A stretch of DNA of 64,000 nucleotides from Macrostomum hystrix (GCA_950097015.1 CATNEN010000025.1:6138001-6202000), one strand, 5' to 3'; counted from the stretch's first letter, positions 22,830-41,900 are shown. Numbers and translations: made by a program. The notes: generated from the letters alone by a model not told the origin.

Positions 22830-23640
22830 TCTCAACCCCTAATCCTTCCGACTCGCATCCCTAATCCCTAATCCTTCAGACTGACATCCCTAATACCTAA
22901 TGCTTCAGACTGACATCCCTTATTTCTAATCCTTCAGACTGTCATCCCTAATCCCTAACCCTTCAGACTGTCATCCCTAATCCCTAACCCTTCAGACTGT
23001 CATCCCTAATCCCTAATCCTTCAGACTGTCATCCCTAATCCCTAACCCTTCAGACTGTCATCCCTAATCCCTAACCCTTCAGACTGTCTTCCCTAATCCT
23101 TCAGACTGTCATCCCTAATCCTTCAGACTGTCATCCCTAATCCTTCAGACTGTCATCCCTAACCCTTCAGACTGTCATCCCTAATCCCTAACCCTTCAGA
23201 CTGTCATCCCTAATCCCTAACCCTTCAGACTGTCATCCCTAATCCTTCAGACTGTCATCCCTAATCCTTCAGACTGTCATCCCTAATCCTTCAGACTGTC
23301 ATCCCTAATCCTTCAGACTGTCATCCCTAATCCTTCAGACTGTCATCCCTAATCCTTCAGACTGTCATCCCTAATCCTTCAGACTGTCATCCCTAATCCT
23401 TCAGACTGTCATCCCTAATCCTTCAGACTGTCATCCCTAATCCTTCAGACTGTCATCCCTAATCCTTCAGACTGTCATCCCTAATCCTTCAGACTGTCAT
23501 CCCTTATCCTTCGGACTGTCATCCCTAATCCTTCGGACTGTCATCCCTAATCCTTCAGACTGTCATCCCTATTCCTAATCACAAATCTATTGGATTTTTT
23601 CCTTATCATTTATCCCTAATCCCTAACCCATCGGATAATC
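22830..23640. repeat. Minisatellite, 22/28-bp units CCCTAA(T/C)[CCCTAAC]CCTTCAGACTGTCAT containing telomeric CCCTAA hexamers
   Basis: About 30 copies; 28-bp units at the left end, 22-bp units at the right end. Confidence 0.95.
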
Positions 23641-24285
23641 CCTAACCCCATAATCCATAAGATTGCAAAGATTCTATCCACTCAGTCCTTTAGATTATAA
23701 TTTAATAGAATTCTAATGTCGCGTATACTTCAACATCTAACACCATCAGGTGTGTCGGTGATGCAATCCCAACTTCTGCAACTAGCGCCTAATTTATTGA
23801 CTGCGCATTGCTGCCGTCAGGCCTCAAAAATTGTTCGCAAGTCTCCTGAGGATCGGACAGCTTGATTGGCCGTTTAGAGAAATTCTTTAGTGGGATTTCA
23901 GAACGACAGCTGCCATAGCTCAATTGAGCAATTAAAAAAATATGCCTCGAAACAGCGGGAGTTTACGATTTCGATGGCCTCATTGTGGTACTACGAGTTA
24001 AAATCTCACATTTTTAGCCCAATCCCAAAACTTTCTCTTCCCATTCTCTCTGTCGATCCCCACGCTTGTAAAAATGGCATGGCGCTTTGTCCTCAATCCC
24101 CAGAATTCGCCCAGCCCCCTGTAGCACTCGACTCCGGTGGCCAATGATAGCACGGCGTGGGGTTACTGGGGACCGCGTTTCAGAATTAAAAACGAAGATA
24201 AACTCAAACTGAGCAACTAATTATTTAGCGGCGGATTTGCTCAGCCAATTTAATAATTTAATAATTTGAAATACCCAGCCGGAAA

Positions 24286-25355
24286 ATGGAACTGTATTCT
24301 TTAGTGAGCAGTCTTAGGAAGCCGGAATCATTGCGCAGTCAGAAATCGACGAAAATTCTGTCTAGCCGCGAAATTGGTTTCCAAGAAACCACTCGCCTAT
24401 CCGGTTTCCAAGAAACCACTCGCCCATCCGGTTTCCAAGAAACCACTCGCCCATCCGGTTTCCAAGAAACCACTCGCTCATCCGGTTTCCAAGAAACCAC
24501 TCGCTCATCCGGTTTCCAAGAAACCACTCGCTCATCCGGTTTCCAAGAAACCAATCGCTCATCCGGTGTCCAAGAAACCACTCGCTTATCCGGTTTTCCC
24601 AATGGCGACACTTCGGGGCTCGACGAAGCCAGTTTTTCAAAATCGAGGAACAGTATCCATCGATTGGCACCATTTCAAACTGGTGCTTTCCAAGAAAGCA
24701 GCAGAACTTTGGTCCGGATTCAGAGCATTGGTTCTCAGGATGCTCGAGCCGCAAGACGCCGCGTTGTGTTCGCTGGCACTGGCGCTCCCCGGGCGACGGC
24801 TGCAGTCGCCGCAACTTCAGCTTCGTCTGGACGCTTGGCAGAACTACGACCACGTCTGCTGGCGTCCAGCTACCTTCCCGAGTTCTACTCGAGGCGACCG
24901 CGAAGGCTGCCAGCGAAGAGAGGCGCCAATAGGCGACAAGGAGCTCATTGTAAGTAACGGCTGTGGATAGATCCCATATCCCAGATCCCATGTCCCAGAT
25001 CCCATGTCCCAGATCCCATGTCCCAGATCCCATGTCCCAGATCCCATGTCCCAGATCCCATGTCCCAGATCCCATGTCCCAGATCCCATGTCCCAGATCC
25101 CATGTCCCAGATCCCATGTCCCAGATCCCATGTCCCAGATCCCATGTCCCAGATCCCATGTCCCAGATCCCATGTCCCAGATCCCATGTCCCAGATCCCA
25201 TGTAAGAATCTAACCATTCTTTTGCAGACATCAGCCAGCACGAGAAGAAATTTCCAAGGGGAGCTTCATACAGCAGCAAGTCGATATCCTCAGCGGTGGC
25301 TGCAGGCGGTGGCAGTCGAGTTCATTCGCTGAGGGGCCGTCCAGCATCAATTTGA
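24286..25355 (+). CDS. Putative highly divergent Cip/Kip-like CDK inhibitor (paralogue A), 2 exons, ~263 aa, with an N-terminal 9-aa repeat
   Basis: Exons 24286-24949 and 25228-25355. The intron is phase 1 with a GTAAGT donor, CTAAC branch site at 25210-25214 and TTTTGCAG acceptor. Start context is aaaATGg. Contains ARRRVVF and LPEFYSRRPR (p27: LPEFYYRPPR). Family assignment rests on short motifs only. Confidence 0.5.
24376..24592 (+). repeat. 27-bp tandem repeat (GGTTTCCAAGAAACCACTCGCTCATCC) inside the predicted CDS, encoding SGFQETTR(S/P/L) x8
   Basis: Eight copies with the frame preserved; a related FQE motif recurs downstream (GAFQESSRT). Confidence 0.9.
24969..25203. repeat. Minisatellite, 14-bp unit CCCAGATCCCATGT filling the intron of gene 24286-25355
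   Basis: About 17 almost perfect copies. Confidence 0.97.
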
Positions 25356-25804
25356 ATTTTTGCTTCTCTGCTCTTTGTCATGTAAATGATACTTTAATTA
25401 TTAATTTCTTACCTTGTAATACTTATGTTTAAATATATTCGTAAGTAGTGCAACAGACTGCGTGTAATTTGCTCGCAAATTAGCAAGTCAATCTAAAATA
25501 TCTAAACAATTTTGTTAATTTTTTAAAACGTAAAGAAAAATATTATTTTGGCGAAGTCCGTTGTCAAAAAACAAGCATTGAAATTTGGAATTTATTATTT
25601 GTTTCCGTTCTACACTTTGGCATAAAAGATTTTGCATGACAAATTCAAATCGTTTGTTTTTGCCCATCCGGGCACTTAACAGATTTTTGCATTACTTTTT
25701 AATTTTACTGGCTCATTGCAAGCTTTCATGGCTACTTGCAGTAGCCAACTAAGAATTACTTCCTGAAACTAAAGATCGTAAAGGATATTTCCCGATTTGG
25801 TCCC

Positions 25805-25970
25805 AATTACTTCAGGACCAATAGTACCAGTTGCTCCATTACTTCAGGACCAATAGTATCAGTTGCTTCATTACTTCAGGACCAATAGTACCAGTTGCTC
25901 CATTACTTCAGGACCAATAGTACCAGTTGCTCCATTACTTCAGGACCAATAGTCCCAGTTGCTTCATGAC
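25805..25970. repeat. Minisatellite, 32-bp unit CATTACTTCAGGACCAATAGTACCAGTTGCTC
   Basis: About 5 copies. Confidence 0.9.
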
Positions 25971-26419
25971 TTCAAAGCAACTAATCCCAGCTCTCATTAT
26001 CCCAGACATTGGCAATAAAATTTCTTCTTTGAGTGGAGTTACTGTACTCTGGTCAGACAAATCACTGCAAATGTGAAAGGCTATGGTTGTGTCCGTTGAT
26101 TTCCGGTCATACCCTTGCCTTCTGTTTCAAATGACATGTAGTGGGCAAATTCTGCGAAACCCGAGACCAATCTGCCTGCTTTGATTTTTAATTAGTGCTA
26201 GTGTTGGCACATTGGTCAATTGTGACTGCTTCTTATCTGGAGCTGTGCTGTGTGTGAGTGAGGCCAAGTTGTTTGGGTTCTTGACTGCTTGTGATCAGGT
26301 TACGAGCTAAATTACATGCGTTATACCTATAATGCATGAGAAATCTTCCAGACCAATCGGCAAATCAGATATCAGAAAAAAAATCGGGAATCGAGAAATC
26401 TCCTATCTTCCCGATGGGA

Positions 26420-27000
26420 GAGAAATTTGGGAAACAGGGGAGAAATCGGGAAGATGGGAGAGAAATCGGGAAGATGGGGGGAGAAATCGGGGCGACGGGA
26501 AAGAAATTGAGGAGAGGGGGATAAATCGGGAAGATGGCGGATAAATCGGGAAGATGGTGGAGAAATCGGGGCGACGCGGGAGAAATCGGGAAGATAGAGG
26601 AGAAATCGGTAAGATGGGGGGAGAAATCGGGAAGATGGGGGGAGAAATCGGGGCGACCGGAAAGAAATTGAGGAGAAGGGGATAAATCGGGAAGATGGTG
26701 GAGAAATCGGGGCGACGCGGGAGAAATCGGGAAGAGGGGAAGAAATAGTGAATATGGGTAGAGAAATCGGGAAGATGGGGGAGAAATCGGGGCGACGGGA
26801 AAGAAATTGAGGAGAGGGGGAGAAATAGGGAAGATGGGGATAAATCGGGAAGATGGGGGATTAATCGGGAAGATGGTGGAGAAATCGGGAAGAGGGGAAG
26901 AAATAGTGAAGATGGGTGGAGAAATCGGGCGACGGGGGAGAAATTGGGAGAGGGGGAGAAATCGGGAAGATGGGGGAGAACTGGGGCGACAGGGAAGAAT
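26420..27000. repeat. Purine-rich minisatellite, ~20-bp unit GAGAAATCGGGAAGATGGGG with larger duplicated blocks
   Basis: About 27 degenerate copies. Confidence 0.9.
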
Positions 27001-27245
27001 CGGGGCAGAAATTGGTCCTAGGAGATGGGAACACAGATGGAATTTGAAAGAGAGTGACATGGAGGTTAAAAGGGGGTTGCATGACTTGAGCTTGTTGAAA
27101 TGCATAGTATAGTGAAGTGACAGATCGAATTGAATGACTGTTTAGAAGCAGATAGAAGCCAGATAGAAGCGATAGCGTGGGAGAATGCAAGCAAAACAAG
27201 CTTGTGAAGAAACAGCAGAGAAAAAAAACATGCAAAGTGAAAGAC

Positions 27246-27397
27246 GAGAAAGAATATTAATTTATGAAGGCAGCGAATAGAACTTCATTTATAAATGCAA
27301 CACTGCAACCAATGAGAGAGAAAGAATATTAATTTATGAAGGCAGCGAATAGAACTTCATTTATAAATGCAACACTGCAACCAATGAGAGAGAAAGA
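27246..27397. repeat. 72-bp direct tandem duplication
   Basis: GAGAAAGAATATTAATTTATGAAGG...CCAATGAGA repeated at 27246 and 27318. Confidence 0.9.
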
Positions 27398-28019
27398 AAT
27401 GGATAGGTGTTCTCAAATTTCTTTTATTCCGAACTTGCTAATGGAATTCATCATTCCTATTATTCGATTTGGGATTATGAAAGGCGGGCAGGCAGGTGTT
27501 CAGCGAGGTAGGCTGTCTCATGCAGTCACAAAAATCAGCATCTCATTATATAGACATCCCGCATTAACCAGCTGCTTCAACTGCTGCTGACGCTAATAAG
27601 ATTGATATCGGATTACTGAGATGAGATCCGTCATCGTTAAAATCTGGATCATCTTCTGGAGACTGCAGGAGCCCGCATCTGCTGTCTGCAGCCGCAATGC
27701 TGAATATATGTGCATTAAAGTGAGCGGTTATCGGAACCTGCGGGCTGCAAGCTCTGTGCCACGTCCTGGCCCTGCATGATTCTATATTTTAGTTAGCCCC
27801 TATCAATGCCTCGCCCGTATGTACGAGCTATAATGCGTATAGTTATCAACTAATGGCTGTGGCGAATGCTTTATTGGCTGGCGATTGGGCGTTGCGCAAC
27901 CTTATACAATCCTTATATGCATATGGCAATACGAGCTGCCATTTCACATCTTTATGATTTTAATCTAATCTCTACTCATCTCAAAATAACCTCTCTTCTC
28001 ATTTAACCATCCTGAAATT

Positions 28020-28420
28020 TTGCCTCTCCTCTCGCTCCCCATCCTCTCCCTTGCTCTCTCTACACCCTCTCCCCCTCTTTTCTCTCTCTCTCCATCCTCT
28101 CCCTCTACTCTCTCTACATCCTCTCCCTCTACTCTCTCTCTCCCTCTACTCTCTCTCCATCCTCTCCCTCTACTCTCTCTCCATCCTCTCCCTCTTCTCT
28201 CTCCATCCTCTCCCTCTACTCTCTCTCCATCCTCTCCCTCTACTCTCTCTCCATCCTCTCCCTCTACTCTCTCTCCATCCTCTCCCTCTTCTCTCTCTCC
28301 ATCCTCTCCCTCTTCTCTCTCTACACCCTCTCCCCCTCCTCTCTTTCCATCTTCTCCCCTTCCTCTCTCTCCATCCTCTCCCTTCTACTCTCCCTAGTTC
28401 TCCCCTCCTCTTCGTCTTTC
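28020..28420. repeat. CT-rich minisatellite (CTCTCCATCCTCTCCCTCTACTCT-like, ~24 bp)
   Basis: Polypyrimidine array. Confidence 0.9.
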
Positions 28421-29149
28421 TCATTTTCCTGTCTTGCTCTCCATAGCATTTTGGCAGCTGTCGGGGATAGATCGTAGGAGGCGCCTGTCTCTATTTCATG
28501 TTCCAACACAGCTGTCATACATATAACCCATTAGCTGATCAGTCCTCACTTTATAACGTGGATTTTATTTATGCTAATATTTAGATAGTGAACAGTCAGA
28601 GGCCAGTTGAGGGACTATAGGCAACAGTTTCCATAGTAATCACTTCCTTTTGTATGCTCGATTGTTCGTTAAAGACTAGACTTAATTGGATGCCTGAAAA
28701 TTGTCTTAGTAACTAATAAAGGCTAGTTGTTTTCCGCGCCTACTAATAGTTGCTAAGCCGGGGTTGTAAATCCTGCTGGCGGGGGCCCCACTCCACTAAG
28801 CCCAACCCACCCCAACCACCTAGCCAACCAACCAACCCACAAACTTATCACTATGGGGACAGAGAAACACCGCTTTTAATGACTCACTCACCCATTTATG
28901 CGACTGATCAAAAGTTCTATTACTAATGTTTTTCGTATAATAAAATTATTTTCTAAATCACAAATATCAACCTTATCTTCCTTCCGTTCCACTTTTAATT
29001 ATAGATTTAAGGCAGTGTTTGCCATGAATCCAAAAGCTGACTAAATTTGTTACATGGCTAGAGCCGAAGATTGGCTTGCAGGAGAGGAGAGGTAGACATG
29101 TAGGGAGACGAGAAGTAGACACGGGAAGAGAAGTAGATAGGCGACGGGT

Positions 29150-29812
29150 GGTTGATAGGCGAGGAGAGGTAGACAGAAAAGGAGAGGTAGACAGAAAAGG
29201 AGAGGTAGACAGAAGAGGAGAGGTAGACAGAAGAGGAGAGGTAGACAGAAGAGGAGAGGTAGACAGAAGAGGAGAGGTAGACAGAAGAGGAGAGGTAGAC
29301 AGAAGAGGAGAGGTAGACAGAAGAGGAGAGGTAGACAGAAGAGGAGAGGTAGACAGAAGAGGAGAGGTAGACAGAAGAGGAGAGGTAGACAGAAGAGGAG
29401 AGGTAGACAGAAGAGGAGATGTAGACAGAAGAGGAGAGGTAGACAGAAGAGGAGAGGTAGACAGAAGAGGAGAGGTAGACAGAAGAGGAGAGGTAGACAG
29501 AAGAGGAGATGTAGACAGAAGAGGAGAGGTAGACAGAAGAGGAGAGGTAGACAGAAGAGGAGAGGTAGACAGAAGAGGAGAGGTAGACAGAAAAGGAGAG
29601 GTAGACAGAAGAGGAGAGGTAGACAGAAGAGGAGAGGTAGACAGAAGAGGAGAGGTAGACAGAAAAGGAGAGGTAGACAGAAGAGGAGAGGTAGACAGAA
29701 GAGGAGAGGTAGACAGAAGAGGAGAGGTAGACAGAAGAGGAGAGGTAGACAGAAAAGGAGAGGTAGACAGAAAAGGAGAGGTAGACAGAAGAGGAGAGGT
29801 AGACAGAAGGAG
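29150..29812. repeat. Minisatellite, 18-bp unit GAGAGGTAGACAGAA(G/A)AG
   Basis: About 36 copies; produces the spurious EVDRRG ORF. Confidence 0.97.
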
Positions 29813-30477
29813 AGGTAAGAGTAAGATAGAACAGAAGTGTAGCCCCTCGGATGTCGGTGCGATACTAATATTTATTCGGTGTGCAAAACTGAAATTCTGT
29901 ACATAAATTTTAATTATAGCCTACACAGTGATAATAGTTTCAGACAATAAAGTAGTCAAAACGGGCACCAAATTATAACGTTCAAATCTGACTTCAACAC
30001 ACTAGCGGGCTTCAATTTTCAGCCAACCGCGCAACCACCCCACCACCCCAATCTGTTCGTCCTTGCAAACCCTAGACTATAAACGCGGGCCGGCCGGCCG
30101 GCATGTCATAAAATTGTGGGGGTGCTGCGCTTAGTCATGCTCATGCCCTGGCAGGCCTGGGGGACCTTCATGCGTGTTTTTCACGCTAGCACCCAAGTTC
30201 AGCAGGGTGAAGAGGGGTAAAGAACGGAGGATGGGGTGGGGCTGAATCAGCCAATAGAAAGCGATCTGACCAAACCCCCTCGAGTGCCCACATATTTTGT
30301 GGCCCAGCCAACCCCACCCCCAGGGCTATATCACGTGAGGCTTTGCCGGCTGCTCCATATTTTCCAGTTATTTCTCTCAGCAGCCCAGCCGAGCTTTGTC
30401 TTTAGAAGAAACGCCCCGCCGGCTATTATTTTTTTCCATATTGCTCCGGACTTTAAAAAAGCAAGTTTTGTTCAGCA

Positions 30478-31087
30478 ATGCCATTCAGTGCTAGCGCAGC
30501 TCCCAACGGCAGCCGCAGTGGAAGCGGAGGTGCAGTTCGGGGAATTCGCTTCGTCAATAGCAACACTGGCAGCGGAAAAGTTGGATCATTGCAACAGCAA
30601 CATCAGACAGAGAAGCAGCATCAGCAACAGTTGACATTCAATAGCGACATTCTGAGCTCCCGCCTCGACCGTCTGGGCCTGACCGTAGAAGACGCAGCTG
30701 CCATTGCCAAGGCCTACCGGCTGACAGCCGTGCCAGCATCGCGACTGCCCAGCTTCTATAGCAGGCGTCACTGCAGCTGCAAGTCTGCAAAATGCACCGA
30801 AGATGACAGCAGCAGCAGCAGCAGCAAGGCCGGCCTCAGTTCCGTTGGCGCTGGAGTCGTCAAGAGGCGTCCCTTGGTGCAGGCCAGAATTTGTGGTGAG
30901 TTGCTTGAACTTTTATCTGCTATGTTTTCTGTTAGTTTATTATCTATATAAATTTTTTGAAGGTGCTTCATTTTCCCCATCATTCTCTTTTTTTCCAGAC
31001 ATGTTCCCAAGCAAGAAGCGAATCAGACTGCAAGCCTTACCTCAGCAGCAGTTCGCTTCTTTGGCCAAGAAGAAGTCAACTAACTAG
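30478..31087 (+). CDS. Putative divergent Cip/Kip-family CDK inhibitor (paralogue B, p21/p27/p57-like), 2 exons, 168 aa
   Basis: Exons 30478-30895 and 30999-31087 (phase 1, G|GTGAG...TTTTCCAG|AC). YRLTAVPASRLPSFYSR aligns without gaps to p27 YEWQEVEKGSLPEFYYR. The C-terminal KRRPLVQARICDMFPSKKRI resembles the p21 PIP degron KRRQTSMTDFYHSKRRL, with the intron inside the Asp codon. Confidence 0.62.
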
Positions 31088-34422: not shown

Positions 34423-35973
34423 TCATTTCTTCTTCTTGCCGGACAACCGGCCGGACTTCTTGCCGTCCGTCTCCGCCGCCGCCGCAGTCGGCTGCTGTTG
34501 TGCCGCTGGCGCCACCAGCTTGCCGAGGGCCTCGTCAGACTGCTTCAGCTGACCGCCAAAGCTGGAGCGCAGCTCCTGCATCTCCGCAGCCAGTCGCTCT
34601 CGGACGATTCTCTTGAGCTCGCGAAGCGACTCCGAGCGCGGATCAGAAGCGTCCTCGTGATCGGCCTCCTCCCCTGTCGGCATTGCAGCGGATTTTTTTC
34701 AGTTTAAACAAAAAAACAATTCAACTTTTGTCTTACTGAATAGAAACGACTATTGCATACACAACAATATTGAAAAGCCTGTAATATAATGAAAAAAAAT
34801 AAACTGTATCATTTCGTGTGTCATTATGCCTTGTATAATAAAAATATTAACGTTTTTTAAATATATCATAAGCTATAGAATGAGTATTAAACAATATTTT
34901 GAAGTTCGAAATTGTAATTAGAGTCACTTCCTCTAAGTTGGAGCGATAAAAGTTGAAATTAATGTAAAGAGAATTCCTTTTTTCTATTGAATGGCAGTCT
35001 ACCAAAAGTTTGAGGCCTGTAAAAGCCTATGTAAAAACTATAAAGGAGGACAAAAAAAATAATTAAAAAAATACACAAATTAAATTAGCATATATATGCA
35101 TATGTGTAAATGTGTATGTATATATGTATGATTGAATGTATGATTATGGAATATGGAATATGTATGATTATGGAGTATGGAAATCATATATATATATATA
35201 TATATATGATTTGTGATTTCACATATATATGTTTATAAGAAGTATGCAGACGTATTTTGTACACAATCAATAATGTGGTTTTATATTTATTTGTGCAATT
35301 GCTAATAGTAAAAAAAACAAGACAATTTTTTACCTTGCAGCTTACCGCGATCTGCATTGCCATCAGCTTCACTTCGAACAGAAGCGGGCACTTCTTCGTT
35401 TATAATTTTCTTTTCGTCATCAAGCTCCTGCAGTGTCTTTGGAATTTTGATGTAATCAATTGACAGATCCAACTGAACCTGCGGTGTGAATGCATACTTG
35501 TACAGCTTAAAGTGGCGGAAGTATGTGTCAATGAAGTAATGCGAAAGAGCCGATGCTTCTTGTGGAGAAAAGATGCCAAGACTAAAAGGTGGTCGGTGGA
35601 CTGAATGACACAGTACCAAATCCTTGAATAGTTTCAAGGTTTCACCTATATTTCCAAAAGGTGTTTCTGTGGCCAGTTCATGGGTTTGTTTAATAATGGA
35701 TAGAAAGCAAGATGTCTTTTCGCTGTTCAATGCGCTCCTTTGGCAGAAATAAACTGCATAATAAAACAAATCGATAAGTATAAGATGTCGACCATTTGGG
35801 TCCTCTGAGATCTGCAGAGTGTCCTTCAGGTAGCTCTTTATTGCATCACTATCCTTCAAACGAAGAAGCTTGTCCGTGTCCATAACGCCAATGTCTTTCC
35901 AAATATATGCCTTCGCTCTGCGTAATCTTGGAAGCTGCAGAATCGGCTGATCGGTGTCGACATCCTCAGACAT
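34423..35973 (-). CDS. CFAP119: Cilia- and flagella-associated protein 119 / CCDC189 (CLAMP family), 2 exons, ~296 aa
   Basis: Exons 35973-35334 and 34673-34423 (phase 1, CAAG|GTAAAA...GACAG|GG). Motifs IWK...DLFYYAVYFC...TPFGN...CHSVHRPPFS...YFIDTYFRHFKLYKYAFTPQVQLDL match CCDC189; basic C-terminal tail. Confidence 0.88.
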
Positions 35974-37569
35974 TTTAAGGTGAAATAGTTAATATTTAAG
36001 TAAAATCAAACATGCAAACTGCGATTTATTTAGGAAAAGAAAAACTGAATCCGTTTACTAAGCAACAAACTTGACTATAATTTATATCGCTTTCCAAAAA
36101 GTTTTAAGAAAACTTTTTTAAAAAGTAAAAAGCCTTCTAGTTAATGCGTGCGTAGTAGTTATAATTTTAGATTTGTATCATTTTTACCTTATCTTTTGTT
36201 TAATTTTTAGCATATTTATGTTTCGACGGGTTTATTTAAGAATAACGATTGCGACGTTTTTATAAATAAAAACGAACTAAGCACAAATGGTAATTGGTCC
36301 AAAGGTAAAAAATTGAATTTTTACAGGGAGTATGTGCGAGTGCTAGCTAAAAGTTTGGTTCAACTTTGCTTGCGAAAGATCGAAGTTCGGTATCAGAAAT
36401 GCTCGTTTCTAAATTTGCAGTCTGCCCCAGTCTAAGTCCGGCCAAACTTTGTAATGCGTCAAATCAGAATTTTCGTCACTTTTTTCTGCAATTTTTCTTC
36501 TGCTTACTTTTGATTCTATAAAATTCTAAAGTACACAAAATTCAATGTACATTTTGATGACTATGATATGACGTCCATCAATACTAATGGATTGCATGGA
36601 TACGACGTCCAAGGAGAAGTTGTCCTTGCATGATGACGTTAAGAAACTTTGGAAAATGTAAAGTCCAAACTTTTTTTCAAACACGGTTTTTTTGTAACCG
36701 TTTAAAGTCGAGCTGTTACAAAGCCAATGAATTATATTGATGAATCGATTAATCAGGAATAGCACGCGGAAAAAAGTTAGTGAATGATTATAGTTACTTA
36801 ATAGCTTATATTTGTACAGATTTTAAATCAATATTTTACTTTACATTCATTAGCTTCACCTTTACGCATTTTTTGTTTTAACATTTAGCAAGAAATCAGA
36901 TCAGCATAAAGTATACAGTTCTTAGTGGTGAGCGCAGATTGGTGCAATGAACAACCGTTGACAAGATTTGTAAGACAAGCAGAAAGGATTTGTTTCATTT
37001 CACTAGGGTAGAAAAGCAGGTTTATTGCTTTCTTAAAATGATTTATGATTTAAAAAATGCCAAGTGAAATTTGGATGTGTTGCGGATCCCAAATAATGCA
37101 GTTTCATCAGCAATTTCATAATTTTGATCTTTAGTCTTCACTTTGATTCTTACCTATTCCCATCTCCGCTTCCAGAAGAAGGCTAGTACAAATAAGGTTG
37201 TGATGATGCGCAGAAATATAAGAAGCATTGGAGGATCAGTGTAAGGAGGGATTCAACTAAAACTGGACTCAAACGGCACTGTTTTTCCATTCCCAATGAG
37301 TGAAGAGGAATAGATCATATGGGAAAGTATTATTTTTTGTTAATGTCTGATAATCCACTAAAGGCATTTTAGTATAGTGTACTATGCAGTATGCGGCAAG
37401 CTGCTCAAGCCACTGTCTAAGCCACTGATGTTTAAGCGAATATAATTTGTACTGCTCTACGAAGTTCATCTGGTTCGCGTTCAGCTCTCTAATATGTTAT
37501 ATATATTATAGCGTGTCTGACATGGCGAGGCACGTAATATCTATTGTTTATTACCCACTTGCTCTCAAT

Positions 37570-37753
37570 GTCTGTCCCACTCTCACTCTCAATCTCATTC
37601 TCACATCCTCTCACTTTTATTTTCACTCTCACTCGATCACTCATATTCTCTCACACTGTCACTGTCACTTTCACTCTCACTCACTCTCTCACTCTCACTC
37701 TCACTCACTCTCACTCACTCTCTCATTCTCACTCTCACTCTCACTCACTCTCA

Positions 37754-37786
<33 letters not shown>

Positions 37787-37890
37787 CCTCTTATTTTCAC
37801 TGTCACTCGCTCACTCTTATTCTCTCACACTGACACTCTCACTCTCACTCTCGCACTCTCACTCACCCTCTCAGTCTCAGTCTCACTGGC
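37570..37890. repeat. (CTCA/CTCTCA)n microsatellite-like tract
   Basis: Low-complexity CTCACT repeats. Confidence 0.9.
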
Positions 37891-38374
37891 ATTCTCTATC
37901 AAAGTGTTTGATCTCTCCTATGCCCAGTTTTGTTTATAGCCTGGTCCGCGACATGGTCCAAATTGTTTCGGCGCCCTGTTTACAAGCTCATAGGCGATTG
38001 CAACATCGGTATAGAAGTAAAATAATCGGCTTCCACAGTGCCGTGAGAACCAGTTCCAGACAGATAAGCGGGGCGGGTTAAAAATCTTCCGACACTAAAA
38101 AGAGTTTCCTGGAAAATATAACAACAATAATTACAGATTGCTGAAAGGAGCAAAGCTTATACAGAGGCGAAAGTGCGATATGCGCCAAGTGAGAAATGAT
38201 AGGATATAGTGTTACACTTTCCTTAGCAGCAGGACAGGCTCGGAAATTAGCTATTATTTGCTTGCATGATGGCACTGACAAAAACTAGTGATAAGAAAAT
38301 AGAAAAAATACTTTTGTTATCTCGCACTGGTTTTAAAATACGCTCGTATTATATAGGCTATTAGGGATCACGTT

Positions 38375-38690
38375 AATTTTGGGATCAAGTCGATTGCGGG
38401 ATCTAGTAAAATTATGGGATCTAATATAATTTCGGGATCTATTCGAATTAAGTTTGGGGATATAGTCAAAGCTTGGGATATAGTCGAATTTCGGGATCTA
38501 ATCGAATTTTTGGGATCTAGTCGATTTTTGGGATATTGTCGAATTTCTGGATCCAGTCGAATTTCGGGATCTAGTCGAATTTTCGGGATCTAGTCGAATT
38601 TTCGGGATCTAGTCGAAGTTTGGGATCTAGACGAGTTTCGAGATCCAGTCAAATTTCGGGAACTCATCGATTGTGTGATCTAGTCAAACT
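38375..38690. repeat. Degenerate ~18-19-bp minisatellite GGGATCTAGTCGAATTTTC
   Basis: About 15 copies. Confidence 0.85.
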
Positions 38691-38935
38691 CGTCAATTAT
38701 TTAGGGTTCGTCATGACAAAAAATCAATTTTTTTCACCGTTCATCGTAAAAGCATGATTCACGAAAGGAAACTAAAATAATAAGCATAGCAGCTTTTCGC
38801 TTTCTCGGCTCAGTAGATATTGTCCTAACACTGCAGTAGGTCTTTCACTGGGTTGTCCACTTGTTCAGTCGGTTTGCCTACCCGATCCCTTTTCCCGTTT
38901 CGGATTTTTACACAGCCAGGAATTAGGTCTGATCC

Positions 38936-41900
38936 CTAGACAAAGGTGACGGACACCAGCTGGCTTTGGCCATAGTGCGCCAGCATCGGCGCCTGCGCCA
39001 GCAGCTTGGCCTGCCGGGCCGCGGTAGCCGCCGCAGCCGCCGCCGCTTTGTGCCGTCGCAGTTGTCGCTTCCGCTCTCGCCTAGGAGCCCACCGACCAAG
39101 GCAGCTCGCCAGATCGTCGTCCGTGCCAGCTCCGGGCCGCTCCTCTGCCAGCTGACGCGCGCGCTCTCGCAGCAGCCGCGCCCGCACCGGTCGCCGAGTG
39201 ACGTAGCGACTACCGTCAGCGCGACGCTTAACCACCCACTCCATGCCGGTGGAGTCGTTTGTGACATCGTCGGCTCCGTCGTCCGCGGTCTGACACGCGG
39301 TCGACGCCGAGGTCGATGAGGCGGTCATTGCTGCCTGGACGGTAGTGGTCATTGTGGCCGTGCATGACGGTATCGGGCTGGCCCTATGAAGCCGCGTACC
39401 CATGCGGGGTACGGCGGGCCGCCCATTGCTGTAAGACCCGACCGCGGCAGTCGCCACCTCCGCAGCCGCCGCAGCTGCAGCAGCGGCACGCAGACGGGCA
39501 ATACTAGCCGACAATTCATCGATGACTGAGGCGGAAGTCACGGCGGGGGTGGCGGCGGCCGGTGCAGCCGCCTTGTTGCTCTGCGCGCTGCCGAGGCCGG
39601 AGTCTTTGCGGTCTACGCCGGAGTCGTCTTCGTCGACTAAAGTGTCCTCAGCCGCTTCGTCGTCATTCTCCTCGGCTGCCGTGGCTTCAACTTCGTGCTC
39701 GGCAGCTGTGGCTGGCGCGTCCTCTTCCTCTAACTCTTCAGCGTCTTCCTCTTCCTCTTCGTCGCCGTCAACGAGACGCCGCAGCCGCGGCCGGGCCACG
39801 AGCAGGCTGACGACGAGGCCGGAGGTGGCGAAGAGTCGCACAGCCTGGTCGCGAGTTCTCGCCGCCTCGCCGTTGATGCGCAGAATCTGGTCGCCGATGC
39901 GTAGACGTCCGCTGGCTGCGGCTAAACTGTCTGGAGTCACCTGGAATGGGGAGCAGAAGGAAGGGATAACGATGGTTAGAAAGAATCCCATTCAATGCCG
40001 CTTGCTGGCGGGGCAGATGAGGAAAAGATTGTTGAATGGATGGAGCTGGACTCTGAGAATCTGGGCGAATGCGTGCAGCCTCCAATCACTTTGGACGAGT
40101 TTCAGGGGCTGAGGGCAGGATGAACTGGGAGACTAGGGGGGTGGTTTGCCAGGGGACCATTGCACAATTAGGATAATTGACTTCAGCGCTTCCTATTATT
40201 GATATAGTGGGCCGGGTGAGTCAACTGCTAAATACGAGTATATTCCTATACTCGAATGGGCTGATTTATTAGGCTGGAGGAGAGACGGAAAAGAGACATT
40301 GTGCGGAGGGAGAGTTGAAGAAAGGGAGAGTGGGGAGTGGTAGATTAAGGAGTGGTAGAGTGGGTGAGGTAGAGTGGGGAGAGGTAGAGCGGGGAGAGAT
40401 AGAGTGGGAGAGGTAGAGTGGGAGAGGTAAAGTGGGAGAGTTAGAGTGGGGTGAGGTAGAATGGGGGGTAGAGTGGGGAGAGTTAGAGTGGGGTGAGGTA
40501 GAATGGGGGGTAGAGTGGGGAGAGTTAGGGTGAGGTAGAATGGGTGAGTTAGAGCGGGGAGAGGTAGAGTGGGGAGAGGTAGAGTGGGGAGAGGTAGAGT
40601 GGGAGAGGTAGAGTGGGGAGAGTTAGGGTGAGGTAGAATGGGAGAGGTAGATTGGGGGTAGAGTGGGGAGAGTTAGGGTGAGGTAGAATGGGAGAGGTAA
40701 ATTGGGGAGAGTTAGGGTGAGGTAGAATGGGGGGTAGAGTTGGGAGAGTTAGGGTGAGTCGAAATAAAGTACTAGAGAGTGAGAAAAATCGATCGAAAAT
40801 GTTTTTTGCCTAATAAAAAAATGCTTTTTCTAATTTACCTCTCCTATGTAGACGTCTGTCAGGGCCTGCTGCTGCTGCTGCTCGGTGGTTGCCCATGCAG
40901 TATCTTCCGAGCTGGAGCTGCTGCTGTAGCAGAGGGTCAGGCCCAGTTTCTGTCCAACTGCGCTTCTTGTCAGCTGCACTTCCTGTTGTTGGGATATTTT
41001 ATAAGGAAAACTATCATTATCCCTCGCTACAGCTCATCCGGAACGCAAATTATTGAAATTTTCTGTTCCTAGGGAAAATTTATATTTTTGAGATGTAGAG
41101 AAGAAATATGAAGTCTTGAAGTTCAAAGATAGCCAAATATTTAAAGTTTGTGAATTTTAGACAAAGACCTCTTTGGCAAAGACCACTTTGTTATTGAAAG
41201 ACCATTTTGTCAGACAAAGACCATTTTCTAAGACAAAGACCATTTTGTCAGACAAAGACCATTTTGTCAGACAAAGACCATTTTGTCAGACAAAGACCAT
41301 TTTGTCAGACAAAGACCATTTTGTCAGACAAAGACCATTTTGTCAGACAAAGACCATTTTGTCAGACAAAGACCATTTTGTCAGACAAAGACCATTTTGT
41401 CAGACAAAGACCATTTTGTCAGACAAAGACCATTTTGTCAGACAAAGACCATTTTGTCAGACAAAGACCATTTTGTCAGACATAGGTCTTCTCAGCGAAA
41501 ACCACTAAAAACACAAAGACTATTTTGTTCGAAAAAAGCTATATATAGGCAACTGCCACTTTGTTCTAGACAATAACCAGGACTGCAATTCAATTGATAT
41601 TGTCACTTGCCTCGTAGTCGAAATCTTCCACAGCCTGAAAGAAGAGTTCAACAGCGGAGTGAGTCAGAGAAGCGGTGGCCTTGCTGATGCCATCGCTGGA
41701 GGGTGCTGTCGGACCTGCCTTAAGTTGGCTGGACTGACTGGTTGCCATGCCGTGAAGGCTGTTGTAGCTTTGATCGCGACCCTGACTGCGGCCTCCACTG
41801 CCGCTGTGCTGCCGCTGTCGCTGCCAGAGTTGCTGCTGCTGCAGTTTGTTTCGCTCGGACTGGCACAGCAGCGGCTGGTAGTGCTGTACAATGGCTCCAG

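Follow-up and report, generated by a model that had tools for sequence, protein, structure and literature searches.

A Macrostomum-restricted family of small basic proteins as candidates for highly diverged Cip/Kip-type inhibitors

Could free-living flatworms, which have been reported to be without inhibitors of cyclin-dependent kinases (CDKs), carry such inhibitors in a form that sequence searches no longer recognise? This question is raised by two co-oriented genes, A and B, located about 5 kb apart between positions 24,286 and 31,087 of a 64,000-nucleotide stretch of the Macrostomum hystrix genome (GCA_950097015.1 CATNEN010000025.1:6138001-6202000), hereafter the window. In the genome that we searched (220 Mb in 42 contigs), the window corresponds to G000:C25:6138001-6202000. 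A preliminary description of the window had regarded A and B as an old tandem pair of divergent Cip/Kip-like genes. Together with a third gene, C, they are best explained as forming a small family, restricted to Macrostomum, of nuclear proteins that are basic and intrinsically disordered. The most likely reading of this family, to which we assign a probability of roughly 0.45, is that its members are extremely diverged Cip/Kip-type CDK inhibitors.

Planarians have been reported to have neither INK4 nor Cip/Kip genes, with cdh1 as the only known brake on the stem-cell cycle (bioRxiv 10.1101/2021.06.13.448266), and recent papers report that CDK inhibitor genes are wholly lacking in planarians and other free-living flatworms. 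The schistosome gene cki was shown to function as a tumour suppressor (Wendt and Collins, Sci Adv 2025, PMC12693960). In that study, 57 of 60 genomes of parasitic flatworms contained cki, compared with 0 of 37 genomes of free-living flatworms; tblastn returned no homologue in M. cliftonense, M. hystrix or M. karlingi, no cki was found downstream of the TIMM21 homologues of M. lignano, and horizontal transfer of cki into the parasites was proposed (PMC12693960). Searches by tblastn of that kind would not detect a family such as A, B and C.

Gene B has two exons and a C-terminal motif resembling the degron of PCNA-interacting proteins (PIP). Its features, in window coordinates, are as follows.

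30251..30255, plus strand: CCAAT box of gene B, about 227 bp 5' of the ATG, read from the sequence
30478..30895, plus strand: gene B exon 1, an open reading frame of 139 codons plus the first base of a split Asp codon
30532..30552, plus strand: residues 19-25, AVRGIRF, invariant with the M. lignano orthologues; Cy-like (R-x-I-x-F), also fitting the RVxF site of protein phosphatase 1 (PP1)
30733..30768, plus strand: residues 86-97, PASRLPSFYSRR, core of a block of 30 residues that is almost unchanged in M. lignano; 11 of the 12 core residues are identical in C
30880..30895, plus strand: first half of the motif resembling a PIP degron, namely Q-A-R-I-C and the initial Asp base
30896..30998, plus strand: gene B intron, phase 1, within the Asp codon (g/ac) of the PIP-like motif
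30999..31087, plus strand: gene B exon 2, the last two Asp bases, then M-F-P-S-K-K-R-I-R, a tail and the stop

Within the second of these motifs, LPSFYSRR lies at 30745-30768 on the plus strand. The M-F-P-S-K-K-R-I-R of exon 2 holds the second half of the PIP-like motif, basic residues at +3 and +4 and a run resembling a nuclear localisation signal. Among 5.8 billion proteins, the only relatives of gene B were P0001 and P0002, two uncharacterised proteins of M. lignano (E 1e-14 and 8e-13; BLASTP identity 39% and 37%; 48% over aligned columns). They cover 90% of exon 1 and align across the B junction without a break (PLVQ..IC-D-MFP.KKR.RLQA), and the M. lignano orthologue has an intron in the same Asp codon and in the same phase. 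Exon 1 compared with its own genome matched nothing except itself, a metagenome scan with the B alignment gave no match, and the identifier of the M. lignano gene, BOX15_Mlig002845g1, was not found in the literature.

Three blocks are kept between B and the M. lignano orthologues: the N-terminal GAVRGIRF, a block of 30 residues around PASRLP[SG]FYSRRHCSCKSA and the C-terminal KR..PLVQ.[KR]ICDMFP.KKR.RLQA. The stretches between these blocks are scarcely alignable, and this is the pattern of a disordered protein with short functional motifs. When the full-length M. lignano protein was used in place of B, AlphaFold2 (mean predicted local distance difference test, pLDDT, 46.7) predicted disorder except for a long helix at residues 48-100, which separates the N-terminal motif from LP.FY; the atlas model of the orthologue had a score of 0.44. 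Both A and B are basic, with net charges of +23 and +17.

Gene A likewise has two exons, with the following features.

24141..24145, plus strand: CCAAT box of gene A, about 145 bp 5' of the ATG; a common promoter element, context only
24286..24949, plus strand: gene A exon 1, an open reading frame with 221 whole codons, followed by one base of a split codon; RNA-derived contigs of runs X1 and X2 lie on 24421-24949
24376..24596, plus strand: in-frame 27-bp tandem array in the N-terminal half, with 8 copies that encode GFQETTR.S repeats (96% matches in Tandem Repeats Finder)
24751..24771, plus strand: residues 156-162, ARRRVVF, a basic cluster with the family-invariant Phe; Cy-like, also RVxF-like
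24874..24897, plus strand: residues 197-204, LPEFYSRR, the family signature, resembling p27 residues 84-91
24950..25227, plus strand: phase-1 GT..AG intron of gene A, filled with 14-bp tandem repeats at 24969-25203
25228..25355, plus strand: gene A exon 2, which completes the split Tyr codon (t/ac) and continues with 41 codons and the stop; without a PIP box

RNA-derived contigs from two public runs (X1 and X2, of one study) were placed on 23600-25100. All are confined to 24421-24949, except for one at 25048-25091 in the 14-bp intron array, which fits two places in the stretch. None of the contigs of the two runs lies on the 800 bases upstream of gene A, and coverage of the gene is low in both runs. 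An X1 contig (record 6) on 24798-24949 goes on with 30 letters identical to 25228-25257, and the junction 24949/25228 is thus seen as a loose contig end matching the first 30 bases of exon 2. The donor GT stands at 24950, and the acceptor AG at 25226-25227 is followed by AC ATC. Because this contig carries the junction, gene A is expressed and spliced exactly as modelled, with an intact reading frame of 263 codons. Accordingly, the two co-oriented two-exon genes of the preliminary description are confirmed at both loci, by the RNA-derived junction of A and by the match of the B model to P0001 and P0002. In run X2, one contig of depth 2 reads G at 24575 where the assembly has A, which changes Asn to Ser within the 27-bp repeat.

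A third member, gene C, lies on the minus strand of another contig (G000:C39:1281992-1282985) and was found through a 376-codon open frame of the locus L083. Its two exons are as follows.

L083:992-1757, minus strand: gene C exon 1 (L083 is G000:C39:1281229-1284251)
L083:764-822, minus strand: gene C exon 2, read from L083

Gene C has about 274 codons. Exon 1 ends in V-Q-L-R-V-S and a single g followed by gtgagc; 169 bases on, an AG is followed by AC ATG TTC AGT CAG CAG AGG AAG, with a stop 18 codons beyond the split Asp codon. Upstream, the gene has a TATA-like element and a GCCAAT box. The protein carries FEW...PASQLPSFYSRR, with F-E-W 5-6 residues upstream of LPSFY, then a middle part rich in Pro, Ser and Arg, and then a PIP-degron-like end split by a phase-1 intron. 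The 11 of 12 identical residues around the motif correspond to an E value of 2e-4 against B, and 45 residues align with the M. lignano B orthologue at 42% identity (E 2e-5). Since the shared motif is interrupted at the same Asp codon by a phase-1 intron in C and in B, the two genes are paralogues and LP.FYSRR is a family signature; judged from its sequence, C is a clear paralogue of B. The tandem pair that had been described is adjacent and related, but the family is not just a pair, as its third member is on another contig.

Does A belong to the same family? As had been described, A and B share LP(E/S)FYSRR and a C-terminal phase-1 intron and are otherwise unalignable, as BLASTP aligned only 13 residues (E 0.008) and comparison of the two loci at the DNA level showed no similarity. 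In all six frames of the window, FYSRR occurs only at the A and B sites. When open frames of the window were compared after repeat masking, four pairs had a 7-of-8 match in common, so that in a free scan the motif match by itself is close to what chance would give. Across the genome, a degenerate DNA pattern encoding LP.FYSRR gave 11 matches versus 17 for a reversed control, and exact LP.FYSRR is encoded at only four sites in the 220 Mb, namely A, B, C and a short frame at the locus L082. Given these four exact sites and the paralogy of C and B, the co-oriented second copy, in an expressed frame 5 kb away from B, is not due to chance, and the explanation of the match as pure chance was rejected on these two grounds.

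The site at L082 (G000:C25:7534408-7537430, around position 1501) encodes LPYFYSRR in a 70-codon frame, with VRVLFGG 14 residues upstream and VSCGSC after it. This frame is without a start codon or visible gene context, and the site could be a chance match or a decayed fragment. Both L082 and L071 were rejected as further family members because of their short frames and the absence of visible gene context.

Further features join A to the others. A four-way alignment of A, B, the M. lignano B orthologue and C has invariant F, R, S, L, P, F, Y, S, R and R. Upstream, A and B both have the pattern A.R.[ILV].F (p 0.014 when A is shuffled; the ARRRVVF of A has a chance occurrence of 1.4% in composition-preserving shuffles), and in the alignment ARRRVVF stands opposite GLRF of C and RK-RF of the M. 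lignano orthologue. The phase-1 introns of A and B lie near the C-terminus at a matching place, and both second exons start with AC AT. On the basis of these features, we take A to be a diverged member of the same family, as the preliminary description had proposed. As a family signature, [W/Y/L]-R is followed after a short spacer by [A/S]-S-x-L-P-x-F-Y-S-R-R, with a phase-1 intron near the C-terminus; in B and C this intron splits the terminal motif V-Q-x-[KR]-[IV]-[CS]-D-M-F-x-x-x-[KR].

Profile searches had been suggested as a check. Against the relation, A scores only E 12 with the B profile, at about rank 25 among all open frames. The B profile found only itself among 1.84 billion representatives. 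For the age that had been given to the duplication there is no support at the syntenic M. lignano locus, where no copy of A lies within 10 kb of the B gene. A word search with gene A residues 108-221 detected no orthologue, and exon 1 of A compared with its own genome gave matches only to the low-complexity repeat (residues about 3-123) and none to the LP.FYSRR part.

Such results would also fit gene A being a decaying or neofunctionalised duplicate that has no cell-cycle role and is merely transcribed. Its LP.FYSRR core would then be kept by descent, while the PIP box was lost and the 27-bp repeat expansion gained. The absence of a PIP box, the low complexity outside the motif, the failure to find an orthologue by word search or a copy beside the M. 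lignano B gene, and the low coverage in two runs are all consistent with this idea. However, the 263-codon frame is intact, the period of its repeat is a multiple of three, splicing is precise, and LPEFY with the following R.P.R pattern is nearer to p27 than are the corresponding parts of B and C. We consider it unlikely that A is such a duplicate.

What, then, could the conserved end of B and C do? The published PIP-degron signature is Q/N-x-x-psi-T-D-theta-theta-x-x-x-R/K, in which the Thr gives high PCNA affinity (PMC3973308). The corresponding motif reads Q-A-R-I-C-D-M-F-P-S-K-K in B, Q-T-K-I-C-D-M-F-P-I-K-K in the M. lignano orthologue and Q-L-R-V-S-D-M-F-S-Q-Q-R in C. The Q, the psi position, the D, the second aromatic residue (F) and the basic residue at +4 (P-S-K-K in B, P-I-K-K in the orthologue and S-Q-Q-R in C) are kept in B and C, although these paralogues are otherwise almost unalignable. 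A strict DNA pattern for the PIP degron gave seven matches in the genome, none of them in a credible gene.

For a model of the complex, residues 143-188 of P0001 were combined with full-length PCNA P0004, which is 75% identical to the PCNA exon of this genome. The model of PCNA with the orthologue tail reached an ipSAE of 0.82, and the best of three controls reached 0.02. In the benchmark of this score, the same mark was attained by 51 of 78 solved complexes and by 2 of 108 mismatched pairs. At least 81% of contacts were common to the three runs, and the pLDDT of the partner was at least 54. In the modelled interface, PCNA residues 40, 43-47, 124-129, 233-234 and 250-257 face partner residues 153-167, and this is the canonical PIP pocket of PCNA under the interdomain connector loop. 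The docking model supports, without proving, PCNA binding of a B-type tail. Taken together, the motif and the model make the reading of the ends of B and C as putative PCNA degrons well supported. Two points reduce its weight. The motif has Cys or Ser for Thr and Met for the first aromatic residue, and the model used a PCNA that is not the species' own and may carry a memory of solved PIP complexes.

The host genome has two PCNA genes 3.7 kb apart (G000:C24:3881814-3882188 and 3885509-3885883, L016 and L015). As their PCNA_N scores are identical and their spacing is 3.7 kb, this pair is a recent tandem duplication.

The same tail allows a second explanation of the family, in which its members are lineage-specific PCNA-binding disordered proteins, neither CDK inhibitors nor Cip/Kip descendants. 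The PIP-like tail would tether them to PCNA or direct their destruction there, as in PAF15/PCLAF or Spd1, while PAS.LP.FYSRR would bind another partner and the likeness to p27 would be a convergence of short motifs. The docking model, which passes, speaks in its favour. On the other hand, the small disordered animal proteins that are known to end in a PIP degron are mainly Cip/Kip inhibitors, which weighs against it.

In Cip/Kip proteins, the element [FY]-x-W forms a strand that is followed by L-P-x-[FL]-Y, and p27 has Y-E-W eight residues before LPEFY. Gene C has FEW and then LPSFY, B has AYRL and then LPSFY, the M. lignano orthologue has AWRL and then LPGFY, and A has LPEFY alone. The LPEFYSRRPRRLPAK of A matches LPEFYYRPPRPPK of p27 (residues 84-96) at 8 of 13 positions, where the p27 peptide as printed is GSLPEFYYRPPRPPK, residues 82-96 (PMC1524731). 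Where p27 has QRKWNF (Table S5 of PMC12693960), the M. lignano B orthologue has QRKRFIDL. The elements of B are arranged in the order of a Cy-like R-x-I-x-F, a predicted helix, a basic run and then RF[IV]D[LV], LP.FY with basic residues, and the C-terminal PIP-degron-like motif; an aromatic-x-[W/L] element (F-E-W in C) sits between RF[IV]D[LV] and LP.FY. As far as the sequences indicate, this order resembles that of p21 and p27. The split of features that had been noted between the two genes also holds, with ARRRVVFAG and the p27-like peptide in A, and in B the PIP-degron-like motif that docks onto PCNA in the model.

A considerable set of negative results has to be weighed against a Cip/Kip identity. 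The Pfam CDI profile (PF02234, InterPro IPR003175) had no match on A, B or C at E up to 10, and a six-frame scan of the whole genome with it gave no match and no canonical CDI gene. PDB searches found no p21 or p27 with the B profile and chance matches only with C, and the language-model atlas returned nothing for the B orthologue or C. The W-N-F-D-F hairpin is absent from A, B and C, whose aligned positions read VF (A), TFNSDI (B) and RFVDV (C), with RFIDL in the M. lignano B orthologue. A genome-wide search with W[ND][FY]DF gave matches at control level, and none of the 30 examined, out of 43, was in a CKI-like context. In place of the canonical cyclin-binding form C-R-x-L-F-G (Table S5 of PMC12693960), B and its orthologues have an invariant AVRGIRF, A has ARRRVVFAG, and C has no counterpart of AVRGIRF at its N-terminus. 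As AVRGIRF is missing in C, a conserved cyclin-binding motif is not established. Regarding the profile searches, the Pfam CDI model covers 49 positions and should end before LP.FY. If so, the best-conserved part of the family lies outside that model.

Since AVRGIRF of B also fits the RVxF site of PP1, we considered that A and B may be PP1 regulators, with AVRGIRF (B) and RRVVF (A) as docking motifs. The PP1 docking pattern is [RK]-x(0,1)-[VI]-x-[FW], into which both strings fit, and disordered chains as basic as these resemble small PP1 inhibitors. However, RVxF-like strings are frequent by chance, C is without the N-terminal motif, and this explanation would leave both LP.FYSRR and the conserved PIP-like tail unaccounted for. 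We regard it as very improbable.

The negative results speak in favour of the idea of PCNA binders without CDK inhibition, namely the failure of every method to detect a CDI domain, the lack of W-N-F-D-F, and an N-terminal motif that B and C do not have in common. Against this idea, four Cip/Kip-like elements occur in canonical order and with similar spacing, F-E-W stands directly before LPSFY in C, and A matches the p27 peptide at 8 of 13 positions. We treat it as a tentative but serious possibility. The Cip/Kip likeness put forward in the preliminary description stands as far as the order of motifs is concerned and does not extend to a CDI profile match, W-N-F-D-F or a shared N-terminal motif. 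The reading of A, B and C as CDK inhibitors, judged from these sequence motifs, is plausible but unproven, at the odds given above.

If A, B and C are diverged Cip/Kip-type inhibitors, LP.FY could form the 3-10 helix that enters the ATP cleft of the CDK, and [F/Y/W]-x-[W/L] could form the strand preceding this helix. B and C would be p21-like, binding PCNA and being destroyed in S phase through CRL4-Cdt2, and A would be p27-like, having lost its PIP box. All three would then be expected to bind and inhibit CDK-cyclin complexes. With regard to descent, free-living flatworms may never have lost Cip/Kip inhibitors, and A, B and C may be vertically inherited descendants that diverged beyond the reach of BLAST and Pfam; we hold this only as a guess that is worth keeping, and somewhat doubtful. 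If it is true, it would undercut the horizontal-transfer view based on the lack of cki in free-living relatives (PMC12693960) and the position of cdh1 as the sole brake of the flatworm stem-cell cycle (bioRxiv 10.1101/2021.06.13.448266), and the A/B tandem would be an independent instance of the division of labour between p27-like and p21-like proteins.

A, B and C are testable counter-candidates to the reported absence of CDK inhibitors in free-living flatworms. Macrostomum is a model of stem cells and regeneration that is tractable by RNA interference, and the family supplies concrete genes for knock-down. If they are CDK inhibitors, the view of how flatworm stem cells exit the cycle would be revised and the argument for horizontal transfer weakened. 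If they are not, a new class of PCNA partners would be defined.

Other parts of the locus and of the host genome were also described. Tandem repeat makes up 41% of the whole window, and the 5 kb separating A from B (25806-29817) is largely made of minisatellite arrays with periods of 32, 20, 72, 24 and 18 bp. The gene order 3' of B is kept in M. lignano (window 34471-41658 versus L014:13387-21158) and includes a small gene, a 223-codon gene at 35302-35973 that is 74% identical in M. lignano, and a PDZ-domain gene; upstream of B, there is no conservation with the M. lignano locus within 10 kb. A CDK1-like gene, L034 (G000:C39:17743534-17746557), has PSTAVRE instead of PSTAIRE and consists of short exons with introns filled by tandem repeats, and a search with the PSTAIRE pattern gave no match. 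A B-type cyclin (L017:1048-2520, minus strand, G000:C24) has its whole cyclin box in a single exon, with cyclin B1 as the top PDB match (E 3e-42).

Finally, the family can be compared with named systems. Like the Schistosoma mansoni cki (Smp_199050) and the cki-1 and cki-2 genes of parasites (PMC12693960), A, B and C are flatworm candidates for cell-cycle brakes encoded by small genes. The parasites differ in keeping CRRLFG...WNF (Table S5, PMC12693960) and the TIMM21-cki-TUBB order, whereas these motifs are absent in A, B and C, and there is no TIMM21 microsynteny, as the sole TIM21 match is on contig C2 while A and B are on C25 and C is on C39. PAF15/PCLAF and fission-yeast Spd1 are likewise small disordered proteins that work through a PIP box on PCNA, in the case of Spd1 via a PIP degron, but there is no sequence likeness beyond the PIP box and neither of them has LP.FY. 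With p27/CDKN1B, A shares the peptide match and the absence of a PIP box, and it differs in having no canonical N-terminal CDI motifs and in its eight-fold repeat of nine residues. The p21/CDKN1A type (also Xic1, Dacapo and CKI-1) differs from A, B and C, which have no CDI profile match, C-R-x-L-F-G or W-N-F-D-F, and its PIP motif contains T-D-[FY]-[FY] where B and C have C/S-D-M-F. The likeness to this type consists in small, basic and disordered proteins, an inhibitory segment that ends in L-P-x-[FL]-Y, and a C-terminal PIP degron with basic residues, and the order of these elements is the same in B and C.

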